Below are positions 10,282-24,421 of a stretch of 64,000 nucleotides of DNA, one piece after another. The position numbers were made by a program, and so were the translations under genes. Below the pieces are notes generated by a model, which saw only the letters and a list, made by a program, of their open reading frames with translations, had not been told where the DNA came from and did no database searches. This DNA comes from Orbicella franksi. Lineage: Eukaryota. Within the stretch, counting starts at the first letter, position 1, and every line of letters begins with the position of its first letter. The DNA is taken from contig OZ116702.1 in NCBI GenBank assembly GCA_964199315.1, positions 26,474,001-26,538,000 of the forward strand, read 5' to 3'.

Positions 10282-10835
10282 CTAGTGACACATTGCAATG
10301 CCTGACAATAGCGCCCTCGTCTTGCGGCTGCGGTGGTGATGAATCACGGACTTCTTTCTACGACAGCACTGTGCTGGGCAAGGTGGAGCACAGTTTGTTG
10401 CGTAGCAACTCTGATCACATGACGCGGGTGGCGACTGCGGAATGACTGCGGGTTGAGCGTAACCAGCTGGGGGTTGGTACCCCGGCTGGGGTCCCATGGG
10501 GGGATATACCGGCTGGGGTCCCATAGGGGGAAATGGCTGGGGTGCCAATGGAGGTTGTGCTCCCATACAGCAGCTAGGTAGATAGGATGGGGCACATGTG
10601 TCCGGGCACGGGCCTGCCCCTGATCCCACTGGTGGGGTAGGGGGCGGAATGAGGACGTCCGCGCAACAGGTTTCACTGCACGATGGGGCACATCCAATCG
10701 GATCTTTGCATCTGGCGGGATCACAGTATCGAGGCTGGGGACAAGGGTTGTATGCAGCTGGAGGTCCCGGGTGTGGGTGACCTCCCAGAGGACCTACAAC
10801 CTTATATGGCAGTTTGGGTTGCTCTTGTGGTACTT
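10282..10835 (-). CDS. Gene B alternative last exon (isoform 2, 264 aa): second tri-CRD exon
   Basis: Strong polypyrimidine acceptor TAG|AA at 10836/10835 in phase 1, compatible with the donor at 12265. Encodes three CRD-like blocks, a stop at 10282 and AATAAA at 10268-10273. I found no signal exon or good donor between 10836 and 11480. Confidence 0.7.
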
Positions 10836-11479
10836 CTATAGAGAAAAGAGAAAGGAAAAGATTAGCTTGCAGCTCTGACAACAACATGACTTTAGACGTA
10901 GTTATTGGATTTTGATTACTTTTTTACCGCCAAACAATGTCTCATCGCAAGAGATTGCACAATTGCCTATTAGAATTTGAGGTCGAAGTTGAAAATCCAC
11001 GGAAGCTTAAGAACATCAAGGCTTCCGATCTTTAACCCGGTGGTAAAATAAAAAGAGCCAACACTGACATGTTTCAGTTCGAGTCGCGCTTTCTCTTCTT
11101 ATGCCTATCGGTTGTTGTCAAATATGCAAGCTTAGAGAACCAAGCCAGAAGTTAAAGATAGGAAGCCTTTTAAGTAGCAAGGGAGTCATTAAGCAGTTGA
11201 GAATTCCTAAGAGACGCGTTTCAAAATGTCATAGTCGCCGCAAATTTATTCCTTCAAATCACTTATAAAATCAATCTTTTATGACCACAAACCACAAATC
11301 ACGCTAAATTTGGTTTACATTTTGTTTGAAAAATTCTAAATTATCAAAAGTCAAATATCAATATGACTGTAGCATCCTTAGGACGAAGTAGAAATATGGG
11401 GTACGTTTCCTTGGCCGCAAGGAGTGGTACCCTTGTTCTATTTACAGCTGAACGTGTTGTCTAGGAAGTTTCAAAGGTG

Positions 11480-13822
11480 TTAGTGGTGGAAGTTTCGTTT
11501 GCTTGCGACTTTCTTAAGGTTTCCTCTCTTGTGGTGCTTGCAACATTGGGGTGGGCAGGTCGGTCCGCATCCATCGACACAGGTCTGTCCGCACAGTACA
11601 ACCGGAGGGCCAGCTGGTGGGGGAGGTGGAGGAGGAGGGGGAGGGGGTGGTGGTGGAGCTTGGCAGCAAGAGGGAAGGTTCATAGGAGCACAAACGGAGG
11701 GACAGGGAGCAGGCATGGGCATTGGCATGGGCATCGGTACGGGGCAAGCACTAGGGGGAGTGCATGGTGGCGGCACGGGTGTCATACAGCAGTTCTCCAT
11801 ACAGGCGGGTGCGCACACCTGAGGACATGTGCCAGGGCAGATTCGGGGCTCAGGTTTGGGGGTGGGGACTATAAGAGGAGGAGGTGCTTCACCTGTCTCT
11901 GTAGGTGGAGCTGTGAAGAAAAGAAAAGAAAGGAAAATTAATTGCAGCAATAGCAAGAGAAGGATAAGTAAATTACTAGAAGGACCCTATTGACCTCTTG
12001 GTTCCCTTTCAAAATTCTTCTTACAACGACCCGTCTCACTAATAAATTAAGGAACCCTAGGCCCCCTTTGGGAAGATCTTTTCATAAGTCTATTGCTTAT
12101 CTGGAAGTCTGATTGGCTGCATTGAAACCAACTACGGATCTATACAACTCCACGTTTGCAGTGTCAATTTTAAATCAAAGGCAAATCAGTTCAAATCGGT
12201 TGCACTGTTACATGAACCAAGCTAAAAGTATAAGGTACTCTGGTTAGCAACAATCAAGTTGTACCTTCTTCAGCGGAGCCAGATTCCTCTCCGCTTCCAG
12301 CTGCTGACCCACCTGTAAAAGCAAAAGAACATTCAGGCTCATAAAAATCATAATTATTATAAAATATAACATGATTCTGAATATGGATATCTAAAGAAAT
12401 ATTACATTGAATAGTTTAGTAACAAAACTAAACCTAAAAGTAAAAACAAAGTAAAAAACAACTAACCAACCAACCAACCAACCAACCAACCAAACAAACA
12501 AACAAACAAACAAACAAACAAACAAATGCAAAGAGAGCAAAAATGATATGCATCTCCGCTAAACATTCATTTTGAATTTTCTTAAAGGTAATTTGAAATA
12601 ATTTTAAAACAATGTTATGTAAATATGTATTTTTAAGAACCTCTCAGCCGGCAAATAACATATATGTATTTGCCTAGCATTATGAGGTGGTTGAGGGTCA
12701 AACGGTGAGTACAAGGACGAGTAATTCCAAATAATACCTCTGGCTCGGAAAGAAGTAAACTCGCGTTCCTTACGCTAGAATACCAACTTTGGAACTTATA
12801 CCAAAAGGAAGACGCTTGCGGGCAGCTAATAAACAAATGACGTATGTTTTGATTATCAGAGGGGCAGAAAGGGCAGGATGGGGAGGCAACCTTGTTCATT
12901 TTGCATAATATACTGTTCGTGGCTAAAATGTTGTGTATAATTTTGTGCTGGAACATTGCCAATTTAACTTCTTTTGTGGCTGTGAAAGGCAGAAGATAAA
13001 TTTTATTTAGATTCTCTTTTGTGATGCCGTATGATGAGAGTTTTTTTTCTGAAGTGGAAGGAGGAAGATTTTCTAAGGTTAACAGTTTGTCGTATAACAT
13101 CTTGCACGTTATAGTACAGATTGGTGGCGGGGGTGTAGTAGAGTCGCCAGAATTAACGTGAAGGAGCTTCTTCCAACTTTGAGGGATCGCAGATAAAAGA
13201 CTATGATATTGTAAAAAGTTGCAATTTAGCGTGTATTTATTGCGCAAGGAAAGGAAAGGCTGGAAGCAATTTTGATGCTCCTCAAAAAGGTCTGAAATTT
13301 ACTTTATACCTGCTCGGTGCCAATAAGGCAGATATACCGTTTTTTTGTCAATCGTAATGAATTTGTTGTTCCAGATTGTCTGAGACAGTATCTCGGTCTT
13401 GCTGTGAGGTGTCGTAGACACGATTTCTTACCAATGATGAATAATTTGTTAGTAAAATTCAGGAAGATGGCCATTAAGATCAAGAAAGTTGTGGTCATAA
13501 TTACATTGTAAGAACTCAGTGCCGCCGACAGTAGAGTGAAATGATTTTGGAATATACTTCCACGGTGCATCTGAGTCGGAGCACAGCCGTTTTAACCAAG
13601 TTAGTTTCAAAGCCTTATCGAAAAGAACAAACTCTTTCATGCCAAGACCGCCATCCGATTTCTTCTTGATGAGGGTTTTCTTTTTTATTTTGGCGGGTTT
13701 TTGCTTCCAGATGAAATCGAACACTATTTTATTGACCTCTGTTGCAAAGTTTTTTAGAGTCTCCATAACACTGGAGATAATAAAAGTTTGGAGAGGGCTA
13801 ACGTTTTAACAATATTTATTCT

Positions 13823-13853
<31 letters not shown>

Positions 13854-13895
13854 TCCAAATTAAGCAATTGGAAAGAAGAAGCCTGAAAAAAATCA

Positions 13896-13929
<34 letters not shown>

Positions 13930-14074
13930 GATACCGGTGCGATGCTCTACCAACTGAGCTATGAAGCCACACATTGGGAGCGAGGTCAATTTATTGAGTT
14001 CATATCTTCCCGTGAGGAGTGAAATGATGTGAAGTAAATATGAAATGATTCATATTTGAACTGCGGTTGTAGGT

Positions 14075-14105
<31 letters not shown>

Positions 14106-14149
14106 TCCAATTTAAGCAATTGGAAAGAAGAAGCCTGAAAAAAAAATCA

Positions 14150-14183
<34 letters not shown>

Positions 14184-14252
14184 GATACCGGTGCGATGCG
14201 TTGAAGCCCTGATTTTTTTTCAGGCTTCTTCTTTCCGATTGCTTAAATTGGA

Positions 14253-14283
<31 letters not shown>

Positions 14284-17060
14284 ACCTACAACCGCAGTTC
14301 AAATATGAATCATTTCATATTTACTTCACATAATATTTATTCTACCGTATATAGATAAGTCTCTTCGGGACCAGACACTTAAGGTTTTCTTTAGGGATCC
14401 TAATTTTTCAAAGAAATTTTTCTTATGAGACAATTCTAACTTTCTAAATTTTAACTTTCTACTTGTATCTTGGGATATTTGGTTCAAACATTGTTTTGCT
14501 AACTGCTTCTATGGGACTTAGGTGTTAAGCCACTATTTTATGCTAAGTTCTGAGATTGTACAGGGACCAAAGTTTCGCATTATCCACAGCAGTCCTACTT
14601 ACCAGCAGCACTGCCTGAGGCAGCTCCAGCTTCTTCGGCTTCGGGTTCTTCTGCGGCAGCAGCTTCATCATCCTGTTTCTTGCCTTCATCTGTGATAAAC
14701 GTAAAACAAAACATTCGAGCTCTGTTTTGCTTAGGGAGGAATTCTGAACTTATTCCTGCGAAGTCGGTTGAATTGGTTGCAAAGCTAATCACGCCCAAAA
14801 CTAAACCTTTTGTAGCATGATTTGGCCCACTTGAAGTTCCTCGGGCTCTTTTTTCACCAAATCATCGTTCAATTGTATTGATTTGCCTCCTTCAGAAACT
14901 GGTTCTATTTTTGCTTAACAACTATGACCAAACGGATACATTGTGAGACTGATCACTGTTCATGAGAGAAAAATAGTTGAAATCAGTCGAGTCAAAGCAA
15001 CTACGTCAAGCAAAACGAGTCAATGTTAGGTCAACGTAAGGCAAGAAATTTCAAGTGGTGTCAATTGAATTTAAGTGAAGTGCAGTCAGATCAAGGTAAG
15101 TGAATTGAAGCCGGGTCAGGTCAAGTTAAGTCAAACTAAATCAAAGGCTAACAAAACAAAAGCTATTTTCAGATCAGGAAAGAATTGATAAAGACTCCGG
15201 TTAACTTAAACTTGAAGGTGTCCGTTTTGGGGGAACGGTGCAGTGCATTTCTGCGTAAATCCAGACATTGGACGGGAAATGCGATAAAATTAAAAATTTC
15301 CCCAATAAATAGTGAAAAATTACGTTCTACAATTTTAAATCTGCCACAGAATTTAGGGCAGTTGAAATTCAAGGTATAGCACTGGAGATGAATGATTGCA
15401 AGCCCCAGATCCCCATACGTGTTTCAGTTGTGCCGTGTAAACGCTCGCAAAGTAGCAAAACGCATGCGTAGTTCACAATTACAATGCAATGAGAATTGTA
15501 ATGAGGGTCGGGATGAGGTTAAATTGAAAGCTTAGAAATGGAAAACATTTAAACTGTCTCGAAGCTGAGAAATGACGCTATTGTAAACTAATAGCTGAAA
15601 TATGAGACCTGCAAAATTCACTGATGGCTGAGAAATGGCTTGAAATTAGCTGAGAAATCGCCCAAATTTTAATTGATAACTGAATTTCTATCGACCACAT
15701 CCGGATCGTCTCGTACTTGGTAATACTTCTAAGAGCGAAAAAGGCCAACTATTTAGATAACTCTTACAAACCACTAGAAGTTAGGGGCGTCCCATCCACA
15801 TGCAGGGGTCAGTTGAAACGTGGACAAGAGAGCGAGTCATGTATTACCTTTCACGAGCCCAGAAGAAATGAGAGCTGTTAGAAGCTTACCGTGCTTGGAT
15901 TTCTTGTGTTTTCCTTTGGCAGTGCAGGAGAGAGAGAAAAAAAAGAAACATTTAAAACATAAACTTTACAATGTTTATTCGGAAGAAAAAGTATTGTTCG
16001 TATTTAGTTTATTATTTTTGCTGATGAGGAGTTATCAACAAGTTTCCAACTATATTTACTTGTTTGTACAGTACCTAACAATCAGTTATAATGCTGGAAG
16101 CTGTGAAGCTGTTTTAGGAGTTAATTCAATGAAGGAAATATCTTGTCTGTTTGGGGTATCAAACAAAACACCATCAATGTACCAGTTTTTGATATGAAGT
16201 TACTCTGTTTCACAAATCGAGTAAGCGAGATGCGAAGGGCTGGGCAAAATGACACAATAAGTATAATCTCAATCAGCCAGAATATTTGCAACTTTCTAAC
16301 GCATTCTGACACGTACGTGACATTGATTCTAAAATTAAGATTGGAAGAAAGCAATGGCTAAGTATGTGTAAATTAAAGTCAACTCAAAAAGTCATCGAGC
16401 CAAATTATAGATCACTTGAATTTTCCAATGTCTAATAGTCACTTCACAGCAACATTAAAATAAACAAGTGGTACAATCACTTGAAATTTTCTGAAAGTCA
16501 AAACACTGGGGAAACAAAGAAATACGTGGTAGAGTGAAAATTGCGGTGGGAACCAGCCAGCTCATTTTGTTTGTGATAGACGTCTCGGAACAATTTTGCG
16601 TTCCCCATCCGTTTTATTACTATGTGTACACTTATATAATACTCCTAACCCTATCTAGCAGTAAACTTCACATGGAAAATACCCCTTCAAAGAGCGTTTG
16701 AAATAAGCTAAAAAAAAAAAGACAATTATAGGTGTCCCATCATAGAAGATGAAGAGAACAACACATTGAATGCAATGAAATATTAACTCGTTGAACTTAT
16801 CCAACCGTGGCACAAAGAAATGCAGTTAAGTTGGGTTGATATGCTTTCTAGACAAATAAAAGCACAGAAGATGTTTCTGCTTTCAGACTCACTGGCATTA
16901 ATGGAAAAAAAAAAAATTTCTTTTTTCTTAAACCACAATGCGATCAATTTGAGATACGTCCAAGAAAGATTCGCTTACCTTTTAGTGACTTGGCATCCAC
17001 ATTCAATGTGGAAAGAGTTAGACCTAAAAGCACGAGAAATACGAAAAATCTAAGCCTCAT
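11480..17060 (-). CDS. Gene B isoform 1: secreted collagen-less tri-CRD protein with acidic Ser-Gly region (cnidocyst wall/tubule candidate), 223 aa
   Basis: Exons 17060-16979 (signal MRLRFFVFLVLLGLTLSTLNVDA-KSLK), 15913-15890 (24-nt microexon KHKKSKH), 14689-14603, 12312-12265 and 11910-11480. All introns are phase 1 GT-AG. CRDs CPGTCPQVCAPACMENCC and CGQTCVDGCGPTCPPQCC are canonical, with polyPro between them. AATAAA on the minus strand at 11245-11250. Confidence 0.85.
12464..13790 (-). mobile_element. 5'-truncated, frameshifted L1/Tx1-like LINE with (AACC)n(AAAC)n tail region, inside a gene B intron
   Basis: ORF fragments 13449-13766 (FDFIWKQKP.KIKK..L...KSDGGL), 13304-13570 and 12633-13247 (zf-RVT-like CPFCPSDNQNIRHLFISC). 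Microsatellite at ~12464-12526. Confidence 0.85.
13823..14331. mobile_element. tRNA-derived repeat insertion: tandem unit plus inverted copy, 12-bp target-site duplication
   Basis: 252-bp unit starts at 13823 and 14075. Minus-strand tRNA-like core at 13897-13968. Inverted arms 14027-14160 / 14199-14331. Flanked by direct AATATTTATTCT at 13811-13822 and 14332-14343. Confidence 0.85.
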
Positions 17061-18655
17061 TTTCCTGCGGAGAGAAAAAAGAAAAAAACCGTTACTCGTT
17101 GTGGAAGAATTAATCTCAGAGCTAGTGTATTAAATTGTTTTGGCTCGTAACTGTTCTGGTTCACCAGCTTGAAGAGCGGGCGGTTCTCTTGATGAACCAG
17201 AAAATTTTAAGAGCGTTTCTAAGGCGACAGTCTGTTAAAGCTGACAGTAACCTCCCCTTAGTGAATTAAATGAAGCAGAGATTTCAAATTTGAAGAAATA
17301 CCTTCTTTCAATAGCCTTTTCCACCCAGGAGAAACGCTCTTTGTTGTTATTATACTACGGGGCAAAAGACTAGAGAGCAACCCTCGTTATCTACCTCTGA
17401 TGTAAGAATAGGCAAAAGGTTATCGACCTGTCGTTCACGGTACCGGTATTATCCATTGTTCCCTAGCTAATCAAGCGTTGAATTTTTCATGGTCGGTGGA
17501 AGAGGACTGAAACCGTAATGCAAACGTGACCCCGGAAAATTAGCTTGTTCTGGTCAAAGGGCGTCATGGGCCATGCAAATCATCCACCACGAATGCTTGT
17601 AAAATTGGGATGGGATGAAACCCGAGGAATAACAGAAACCACGTGCTCATTTAAGAAGACAAGATAAAGACAGGGATCAAAGAGTTAATAAACATCCGTC
17701 AAGGTGTCGAGAATTTTAATGACTGCGCATGTGCACGCATAATTGTTGAGGAAGAACTTTCAAGTGAATGCTGGTGCTAAGAACCACTACAAACGGCTTC
17801 TGGTGGCTTGCTTTAAAAACTGAACTTTTTCTCAGCTTTTTTCGCTCGAGGATGGATTAATAAAAAAAGGAGTATATGGGAAACTTTGAAATCAGCGTAC
17901 CTGAGCTCGTACAGGCGAAAAGTAAAAATGTTTTGGGGATACACATCCTAAGCAAGAAACCAAATACAGCTTTTCGTCTTGGCCGGCGATCACTTAATTA
18001 TTAAGTGTCACTGGATATGTCAATTTTGTCCTTTATTCTGATGCAGATCAGGTTTCATCTCTCTTATTAAAGAACTGGTTAAAGTCTTTCAGTCCAAGCT
18101 GCGCCAAAAGAGACAAAAAACCTTTCAGCGCTGGCTATTTCGAACCAATCGGGAAACAGTGTTGCAATACCAACTGTCTGCTGGTTAGCTGTTGGTACTC
18201 AAGAGTTGGTCAACAAATCAATTTTCTCACTAGCGCTTGTGGCTTGCCGCGCGCGTGTTATCTCCATAGTTAATCAATGTACAAACTTTTAAATTATAGA
18301 GCGTGGAGCAAATTAGAACAGGAGTCAACGAGACGGTTGATGGATAAAGGCTGCTACATGTCCAGGAAATAAATTTCTTTCCGTCCGGAAATAATCCCAG
18401 TTTTTTAATGCGCATTAATCTTCTCCTGTCTCACTCATCCCTGCCTCTTTTACGCGCGTTGCCGGTTGTTCTAGGAAACCGTTATTTTGAGAATTCTATG
18501 ATTTCAGGAACTTCACACGAAAGAACTCATTTACATGCTAAAAGATCAATATACAACACAGCATTTCAGGTTTCCATTGAGCTGACAATACGTCAATCGT
18601 AGAATCCACGGTCAATAGAGATCAACCCACAACTACGAATAGGCTTTACCTGTAA

Positions 18656-20564: not shown

Positions 20565-21753
20565 TCATTTCTTTTTTTGGTAGACTGGGCAACAGCCATT
20601 TGGAGGACCTGGTGGGGCGGGCATACCAGGGGCTCCGGGGGCTCCGGGAGGTCCTGGTGGTCCGGGATCGCCGGCCGGTCCCCTTTGTCCTATATTTCCG
20701 GGGGGCCCCTGCGGTCCGGCGTTACCCTCAGGTCCGGCATACGAAACATATTGTCGCTTGGCTGAAATGAAACACAAATGTCATGTTGAGCATGTTACGT
20801 GCAATAACAACTCATCAGTGCAAATAATTGTCACGATACCCATATATGGTCAGGACGTCTTCATTATCTGTCATCCGTGCATAAAACAGATATCTTGCAA
20901 TACAAGCAGTTTGGCATATTTGGAAGTGTGTTCATAGCCTTCAGTTCTCGCAGAGTTCTACACCACCACATTTATCTAGCTGTAAGGAAATGCGATTCAT
21001 TGCTAAGTTGTTGGACAATGGGAATCACAGTCTTACAGAATTGTCGTCTACATTTAGCCAGCTCGTTCCACCGTTTTGCTAGTTAAATTTCGAGTGACTT
21101 CGCGTGATAATTGAGCAAACTGACATGCTGAACTTAGAAGTCAAAATTCTTATCGGTTGCGAAAAAGTTTCAGAAATTAAATTTGAGTCGTTCTACCAAA
21201 ATTCTACCCTATGTATTTTTAGTTCCCTGTAATAATTGGTGCGTCTTATTTCTACGATGATACGAAGAAAGTCTCAGCTTCTCTGAGAAATGCTTACTTA
21301 GGAACGGTCGCACTAGAGCCAATTTTTACGTTTTTCGAGGCGAGAATAAATTTGTTTATGTACTGTGCACAGGGCCTTCCTTCTGATTTTTCCCTGGCAG
21401 GGCGGGTGGCTGTACACAGGCTAACAGAGTAGAGAATAGATCTCTCTCTTCTGCTTCCCAGGCGTGCATTTTCTTTCCCTTTCATTATTGCAAAGATTGT
21501 TGGTCGTAAAAGTAAATTTCTACTTATAAATCCTTAAATGAATTTTTTAGACCCATTTTTCATAGACAAAAATAAAACGCACACGCTTCCAGCTGTCGTG
21601 TTTTATCTATCTGGTGGTGTAATCCTTGTCGTAAGGAAGTATGTAATAGAATCAAAGTGGAGAAAAGTGCCAACGTATAAAGTACTTACTGTTAAATGCA
21701 CCAGCGGAACAAATCAATCCAAGTGTAAACAACAGTAGAAAGCGGATATCCAT
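20565..21753 (-). CDS. Gene C: minimal minicollagen-like protein without N-terminal CRD or polyproline, 86 aa
   Basis: Exons 21753-21690 ([21 protein letters not shown], donor A|GTAAGT) and 20761-20565 (T-KR-QYVSYA-13 Gly-X-Y-APPGPP-NGCCPVYQKKK*). Probable 5'UTR donor at 22172. Confidence 0.85.
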
Positions 21754-23506: not shown

Positions 23507-24421
23507 TTACTTTCCTGGAGGTGGCACCACGGCACAGCACGGGCTTGGGGGACCAGGAGGTGCAGGCGGTCCGGGTGGTCCGGGGGGGCCTGGTGGTCCT
23601 GGGGCTCCGGCGGCCCCTGGAGGCCCTTGACCTCCCGCCACTCCTGGCGGTCCCTGTGATCCGGGATGTCCAGCAATTCCATAAATCGGAGGCGGAGCAG
23701 GCTTCATTTGGTCTGCGACTTGCGGAATGGGTGGATTTGGTCCGGCTGGGGGAGGACTGCCACAGCAGGATGCTGTACATGTTGGGGCGCAAGCTGGAGT
23801 GCAGCTCGCTCCACAGGGGAAGGCAGAACGCTTTGCTGTGAAACGGGGCAGAGGTTCAGAAGGATTTTGTCATTTAGAAAATCTGAGAAGATCTTTCTTT
23901 AACGTTCATTGACCCAGTGGCACCACATGTTTATCTTACAGATTACGTATATTTAAAACTACCATCTTAAACGCAATCAGTCAGTCAGTCAGTCAGTCAG
24001 TTAATAGTCAGTCAGTCAGTCAGTCAGTCAGTCAGTCAGTCAGGCGGTTGGTCGGTCCGTCAGTCAGTCAGTCAGTTGGTCAGTTAGTCAGTTAATAGTC
24101 AGTCAGTCAGTCAGTCAAACGGTTGGTCGGTCGCTTTGTTAGTCAGTCAGTAAGTTACCAATCAATCCGTCTCTCTATCTCTATTTATCAGATAACAATG
24201 TTAAATAATGAGGACTTATCACATTCAGTAGGTGTGCAACGGAAGCCCTATTCTGGATATAAGTGGTGTACTAAACATGCTGGCAGTATAACTAAATAAT
24301 GTTTTTGATAGCTAGATGTTCGCATAACAAATAACGGCCTATACATTTGACACTTACTGTGCAAAGCTGAGGCGGTGTAGGCAAGGCCTAACGTGAATAA
24401 CAGAGCTAAACGACAATCCAT
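23507..24421 (-). CDS. Gene D: minicollagen with canonical N-CRD, 13 Gly-X-Y and reduced C-terminus (CC only), 130 aa
   Basis: Exons 24421-24358 ([21 protein letters not shown]) and 23835-23507 ([24 protein letters not shown]...13 [21 protein letters not shown]). 5'UTR donor CAG|GTAAGA at 24805/24804. Confidence 0.9.
23977..24150. repeat. (CAGT)n microsatellite with interrupted higher-order units, in gene D intron
   Basis: cagtcagtcagt runs interrupted by ttaatagt and cggttggtcggt blocks that occur twice. Confidence 0.9.

Follow-up and report, generated by a model that had tools for sequence, protein, structure and literature searches.

Which protein carries the chondroitin of the nematocyst is the question raised by a gene of the coral Orbicella franksi. 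Non-sulfated chondroitin has been described as scaffolding the nematocyst tube during its growth, and in the papers covered here it is tied to the capsule wall via lectins alone (PMC9205923, PMC10014300). None of these papers, which date from 2012 to 2025 and treat a chondroitin matrix or sheath of the nematocyst, names a core protein for it, in agreement with an earlier note on this DNA, which had called the core protein ill-defined. The gene, here termed gene B, lies on the minus strand of a window of 64,000 nucleotides (assembly GCA_964199315.1, contig OZ116702.1, positions 26,474,001 to 26,538,000); positions given below are those of the window unless another locus is named. Its product combines cysteine-rich domains (CRDs) of the minicollagen type with an N-terminal acidic tract that holds three Ser-Gly dipeptides. 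The reading favoured here, at a probability of roughly 0.4, is that this product is a secreted structural protein of the nematocyst CRD class, specific to stony corals, and that it carries glycosaminoglycan (GAG) on its Ser-Gly sites. That the coral family would represent a CRD-anchored chondroitin proteoglycan, and so the first core protein to be identified for nematocyst chondroitin, is a slightly more tentative proposition.

The proposal depends on the acidic tract being part of the messenger RNA, and for this there is evidence from two raw polyA runs (one of them X23) and two contig runs aligned over positions 11380-17250. In X23, the joint between the two acidic exons (12312/14603) is crossed by 107 reads, that between exon 2 and the upstream micro-exon (14689/15890) by 79, and that between the micro-exon and exon 1 (15913/16979) by 88. 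All three upstream joints are canonical GT..AG on the minus strand and are also present in the X1 and X7 contigs. Joints that skip exons were listed only at a threshold of at least 10%, and at that threshold none skipping exon 2 or exon 3 was found in these runs. Both acidic exons begin and end in phase 1, and their splicing yields exactly the 45-residue peptide with three Ser-Gly dipeptides (Ser60, Ser71, and Ser75 of the precursor) that the earlier note had assigned to two small symmetric exons; RNA reads connect the two exons with one another and with those on either side, and they are constitutive. Within the six-frame translation of the window, the tract is the only stop-free stretch of 30 residues with at least two Ser-Gly dipeptides and at least six Asp or Glu residues. 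The same note had correctly placed the acidic exons between the signal peptide and the CRDs, and had overlooked the micro-exon that encodes the basic peptide GKHKKSKH (15890-15913), so that the order in the precursor is signal peptide, basic block, acidic block. At position 14641 the window has T, whereas every X23 read and the X7 contig show G, which replaces Glu by Ala (EEPEAEE to EEPAAEE); the Ala state is that of Desmophyllum, and the position lies away from the Ser-Gly sites.

Downstream of the tract the transcripts diverge. In one form exon 4 reads through to the stop codon at 11480-11482, and in the other it is spliced from an internal donor at 11893 to an acceptor at 10835. For the read-through form, isoform A, one X7 contig extends across all three upstream joints at a depth of 28.6, and because the piece covering 11643-11906 has the same depth, this contig is read as linking the long exon 4 to exon 3, exon 2, the micro-exon, and exon 1. 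For isoform B, 52 loose-end X23 reads at 12265 continue with the first 18 nt of exon 4, followed by the letters of 10824-10835. The internal donor toggles between two paralogous last exons that both bear CRDs, with both forms present in the RNA, and the donor context at 11893 is conserved in Desmophyllum and in a second coral locus, L001. The acidic tract is common to isoforms A and B.

The stronger evidence concerns the conservation of the Ser-Gly motifs rather than their number. Eight coral sequences were compared, comprising the window, three annotated models (Porites P0004, Montipora P0008, and Acropora P0005), and four genomic loci in which the N-terminal exons were located (L002 of Desmophyllum, L001, L009, and L010). 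The motif (A/G)SGSA at the end of exon 2 is invariant in all eight, and ESGS in exon 3 is invariant in the seven that have exon-3 sequence, homologues of this exon being found in Desmophyllum, L001, L009, L010, and the Porites and Montipora models. Exon 3 is skipped in the Acropora model and present in an Acropora-like contig, L009. Conservation of the sites in orthologues, a check that the earlier note had proposed, therefore extends across both the complex and the robust coral clades. Around these motifs the tract varies widely. Upstream of the first motif, exon 2 contributes between 17 residues (Acropora) and 72 (L001); over the full tract, net charge is close to -2 in the Acropora model, which is without exon 3, and reaches about -27 in L001. 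In the latter locus (positions 6757-6972 of L001) exon 2 is expanded by approximately ten KEEAG-type repeats and still ends in GSGSAG. Since the two motifs are invariant while length and net charge vary in this manner, the comparison points to the Ser-Gly motif, and not bulk negative charge, as the constrained feature. As to whether a splicing enhancer might account for the conservation of the first motif, its three unchanged codons are uninformative either way, because synonymous differences between the window and Desmophyllum affect about 20% of exon 2 codons (counted by eye). The basic micro-exon is likewise conserved in Desmophyllum, L001, and L010, with a matching basic stretch in the Porites model. 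Montipora model X1 appears to read through the micro-exon donor (GKLLKALIS...), matching the intron frame of the window.

The same comparison bears on a simpler possibility, that the tract is an unmodified charged spacer, in which a basic block (KSLKGKHKKSKH) is followed by an acidic, alanine-rich, disordered block and the Ser-Gly motifs are mere flexible low-complexity sequence. Such a spacer could keep the CRD protein soluble, or could govern electrostatic self-assembly and determine when disulfide cross-links form in the nematocyst vesicle. Every orthologue with a full model has the charge blocks, the length of the acidic part is free to grow and shrink, as in the (KEEAG)n stretch of L001 and as expected of a compositional function, the number of Ser-Gly dipeptides lies within what composition gives, and an acidic N-terminus could find partners in the basic C-terminal tails of both isoforms and of Hydra CPP-1. 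Composition as the sole function does not, however, predict that (A/G)SGSA and ESGS should remain invariant amid many-fold variation in length and charge, and in the Acropora annotation the tract is barely acidic and nonetheless keeps the first motif. A spacer of this kind is considered unlikely, albeit an explanation to be taken seriously.

How well the conserved motifs fit GAG attachment depends upon the rule applied. Under the loose xylosyltransferase rule, Ser-Gly near a cluster of acidic residues (Esko and Zhang, as cited in PMC8418075), all three sites of the window qualify (EEAGAASGS, AGSGEE, and EESGSAEE). A more stringent motif, E/D-G/A-S-G, comes from the non-sulfated chondroitin glycoproteome of C. 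elegans (PMC8418075), and site 1 matches it in four of the eight coral sequences, namely Porites and Montipora (both DASG), L001 (EGSG), and L010 (EASG). The genome also encodes the enzymes that such a modification would call for, with a xylosyltransferase (Xylo_C, PF12529) at one locus and 45 exon-level matches to CHGN (PF05679) at many loci. At C2:31.016-31.052 Mb of the genome (G000), at least four nearly full-length open frames of the CHGN family (~490 aa) lie together with fragments within 36 kb; these are of the chondroitin GalNAc-transferase/synthase type and apparently intronless.

The serines might instead receive another modification, either phosphate from an S-x-E secretory kinase (GSGEE, SGSAEE) or short O-glycans, making the product a cation-binding phosphoprotein or glycoprotein. 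Ser71 and Ser77 do match S-x-E, the adjoining PPTET is a typical context for mucin-type glycosylation, and modest N- and O-glycosylation has been reported on Hydra CPP-1 (PMC6910907). The invariant first site, SGSA(A/G), is nevertheless without Glu at +2 and so does not match the kinase motif, and Fam20 is represented in the genome by one locus. Hydra and a sponge each have one Fam20 as well, a xylose kinase that left the protein substrates tested unphosphorylated (PMC5865150); by analogy the coral enzyme may have the same role. Modification of this other type is therefore regarded as improbable.

Whether the charged module would persist on the finished protein is a separate matter. By definition, the propeptide of a nematocyst protein follows the signal peptide, is charged, and terminates in Lys-Arg ahead of the first CRD (PMC4321713, PMC3145756). 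Neither KR nor RR occurs between the signal peptide and the first CRD in any coral sequence compared, and because no Lys-Arg processing site follows the module, it most likely stays on the mature protein. The competing view likens the tract to the pro-regions of minicollagens and cnidoin; it would then block early CRD cross-linking or serve in sorting and be cleaved before or on entry into the vesicle. Nematocyst proteins do as a rule have a charged propeptide that separates the signal peptide from the N-terminal CRD (PMC4863159, PMC4321713, PMC3145756), the position of the tract fits, and in isoform A a conserved PEPR immediately precedes CRD1, both in the window and in Desmophyllum, L001, L009, and L010. 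Against this, the defining Lys-Arg terminus is absent in all of the coral sequences, whose sole dibasic pairs, all of them KK, precede the acidic tract. A neighbouring minicollagen within the window does carry KR directly ahead of its CRD, and isoform B, which has the same tract, is without a PEPR-type site ahead of its first cysteine cluster. A cleaved pro-region is accordingly judged distinctly improbable.

The proposed class of the protein is read from its remaining parts. The N-terminus is hydrophobic (MRLRFFVFLVLLGLTLSTLNVDA) and conserved in orthologues, as read from the sequence, and would direct the protein into the secretory pathway as a signal peptide. Isoform A contains the exact spacing CX3CX3CX3CX3CC twice (residues 105-122 and 187-204) with a degenerate middle cluster, a run of 14 prolines, and a basic C-terminal tail. 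Isoform B has a second, paralogous proline-rich region, three related cysteine clusters, and likewise a basic tail. Neither isoform contains a Gly-X-Y run, the central repeat of minicollagens, and neighbouring genes do contain one. The Lys/Arg/His-rich tails that end both isoforms (11483-11545 and 10285-10355, minus strand) follow directly after the last CRD, as in Hydra CPP-1, and could bind polyanions such as chondroitin or poly-gamma-glutamate. Minicollagen exons with Gly-X-Y repeats and a CRD (20568-20780 and 23510-23869) lie on the same strand as gene B at a distance of 8-12 kb; the second of these is the one with KR directly ahead of an N-terminal CRD, in contrast to gene B. A last alternative is that the product is a secreted cysteine- and proline-rich matrix protein from outside the nematocyst, skeletal or cuticular, whose tract would bind mineral or matrix. 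The nematocyst assignment is itself deduced, public annotations of the orthologues are uninformative ("hypothetical protein", "basic proline-rich protein-like"), and a Pfam search of the gene B protein matched no family, a single sub-threshold bacteriocin match being ignored. The exact minicollagen-type cysteine spacing, the polyproline run between CRDs as in CPP-1, and the presence of minicollagen genes on the same strand of the window all speak against such a protein, which is held to be very improbable.

Taken together, these features would describe a small proteoglycan of the following kind. Every transcript carries an N-terminal charged module made of the basic micro-exon and then the two acidic exons, and this module would be retained on the mature protein. 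The conserved Ser-Gly motifs would be sites at which xylose initiates a GAG chain, putatively chondroitin, while the CRDs would form disulfide links into the capsule polymer, as those of CPP-1 do, and thereby give the chain a covalent hold on the minicollagen network. Such a protein would resemble granule proteoglycans like serglycin or chromogranin, with the difference of being cross-linked to the wall. In the terms of the earlier note, a chondroitin-carrying, CRD-linked protein is consistent with constitutive exons, conserved Ser-Gly sites, the fit to the loose consensus, the absence of KR, and the enzymes encoded; the part that fails is its extension to the chondroitin of Hydra. Of the three outcomes that the note had named as refuting its proposal, two were looked for, exons missing from the mRNA and Ser-Gly sites that vary between orthologues, and neither occurred.

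Several observations weigh against a chondroitin-bearing product. The loose consensus of Ser-Gly plus acidic residues gives many false positives. Three or more Ser-Gly dipeptides arise in 5.9% of shuffles of the 45 residues (P = 0.059), a count within composition. In the other four sequences, among them those of the window, Desmophyllum, and Acropora, an additional Ala or Val breaks the stringent motif, which is that of a nematode and may or may not apply to cnidarian enzymes. Xylosylation and the chondroitin nature of the chain are suggested by the fit of the sequence, and cnidocyte expression by the domain type and the minicollagen neighbourhood, so that glycan and cell type alike are arrived at indirectly. 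Native Hydra CPP-1 runs as a discrete band of 42 kDa and loses only a few kDa on deglycosylation (PMC6910907). Finally, the gene B family was found in Scleractinia only, whereas nematocyst chondroitin is reported from Hydra and Nematostella.

This apparent restriction comes from several searches. A word-index search returned orthologues from Porites, Acropora, Montipora, Desmophyllum, and other coral assemblies. A profile search with the isoform-B exon against 1.84 billion representatives returned coral proteins and one borderline match (P0013, E = 9e-4), and detected no relative in Hydra or Nematostella. The gene B product therefore cannot be a general cnidarian core protein, and a role as core protein of the Hydra chondroitin is ruled out. 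Within the 497-Mb genome, exon 2 is single-copy, a search of the coral's own genome having returned this locus alone and no paralogue with exon 2. With the N-terminal module of the Porites orthologue as query, the sole match was the orthologue itself. A protein search with exon 4 gave 68 candidates sharing words with it, none of them significant; composition bias is probably the reason, because clear orthologous exons are present in L001, L002, L009, and L010. Look-alikes from the ESM Atlas (nematode C_tripleX clusters) were rejected, their scores of at most 0.79 being at chance level.

The closest architecture described to date is that of Hydra CPP-1, a secreted protein with a CRD, a polyproline stretch, a second CRD, and a basic tail, and without a Gly-X-Y helix (PMC6910907), and gene B is built likewise. 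CPP-1 has features of its own, including a non-repetitive N-terminal region of ~130 residues and a propeptide that is removed, and has no acidic Ser-Gly tract (PMC6910907); gene B differs in that each isoform has three cysteine clusters and in that its C-terminal exon exists in two alternative versions. The profile search with the isoform-B exon gave no homology to CPP-1, and the two are likened by architecture, without direct alignment. With minicollagens, whose genes it adjoins, gene B has in common the cysteine pattern of the CRD and its proline-rich flanks; unlike them, it lacks a Gly-X-Y triple-helix region and a propeptide terminated by KR. The tract itself recalls another group, the C. 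elegans CPGs, serglycin, chromogranin A, and the secretogranins, which like gene B are secretory proteins with a short, disordered, acidic Ser-Gly stretch, and C. elegans chondroitin is likewise non-sulfated (PMC8418075). The likeness to granule packaging proteoglycans is one of analogy only. There is no homology to these proteins or to the CPGs, and the sites of the window are one residue off the nematode motif. Nematogalectin and NOWA have been proposed as non-covalent lectin links from chondroitin to the minicollagen wall (PMC9205923, PMC10014300), whereas the link provided by gene B would be covalent, through Ser-O-xylose on a disulfide-bonded wall protein.

Were the CRD-anchored proteoglycan to be borne out, a covalent bond between sugar and protein would be added to the lectin links now assumed, and no earlier proteoglycan would match it in being held covalently by CRDs. 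A conserved and constitutive Ser-Gly module on a CRD wall protein also provides a concrete peptide and three named serines. The reach of the proposal is limited to stony corals, which are poor experimental systems, and the chondroitin of Hydra and Nematostella would be left unexplained unless other CRD proteins in those animals bear an analogous module. The parts of gene B are collected in Table 1.

Table 1. Positions in the window of the exons, coding features, and one intronic repeat of gene B.
Feature	Positions	Strand	Remarks
5' untranslated exon, 3' end	17302..17340	-	59 X23 reads run from the exon-1 acceptor into the letters of 17304-17333
Exon 1	16979..17064	-	ATG at 17058-17060; hydrophobic signal peptide, then KSLK; ends in phase 1; joint 15913/16979
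Micro-exon, 24 nt, phase 1	15890..15913	-	encodes basic GKHKKSKH; joints 14689/15890 and 15913/16979
Acidic exon 2, 87 nt, 29 codons	14603..14689	-	ends in ASGSA; Ser60 codon at 14616-14618
Acidic exon 3, 48 nt, 16 codons	12265..12312	-	GSGEE (Ser71, 12293-12295) and ESGS (Ser75, 12281-12283)
Exon 4, common part, 18 nt (APPTET)	11893..11910	-	ends at internal GT donor; in both transcript forms
Exon 4, read-through part, isoform A (223 aa)	11480..11892	-	stop at 11480-11482
Canonical CRDs of isoform A	11786-11839 and 11540-11593	-	degenerate CRD and 14-proline run between them
Alternative last exon, isoform B (270 aa)	10282..10835	-	acceptor at 10835; stop at 10282-10284; loose-end reads; orthologues P0001-P0012
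tRNA-Thr-like repeat (resembling a short interspersed element), intronic	13896..13968	-	found with ARAGORN; outside the protein

The introns of gene B contain several repeats. The region 13822-14334 holds two direct copies of the tRNA-Thr-like short interspersed element together with an inverted repeat of 122 nt and 98% identity. Its repeat depth in the RNA runs is enormous, and read joints there delete 340-520 nt between the copies. Long stop-free stretches of intron at 12636-13805 (minus strand) resemble the tail of a retrotransposon open reading frame, like that of a long interspersed element, and reads on this stretch differ from the window at many places, as expected if their source is a dispersed repeat with copies elsewhere. 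A (CAAC)n(CAAA)n microsatellite is also present at 12463-12526, in the intron that separates exon 2 from exon 3.

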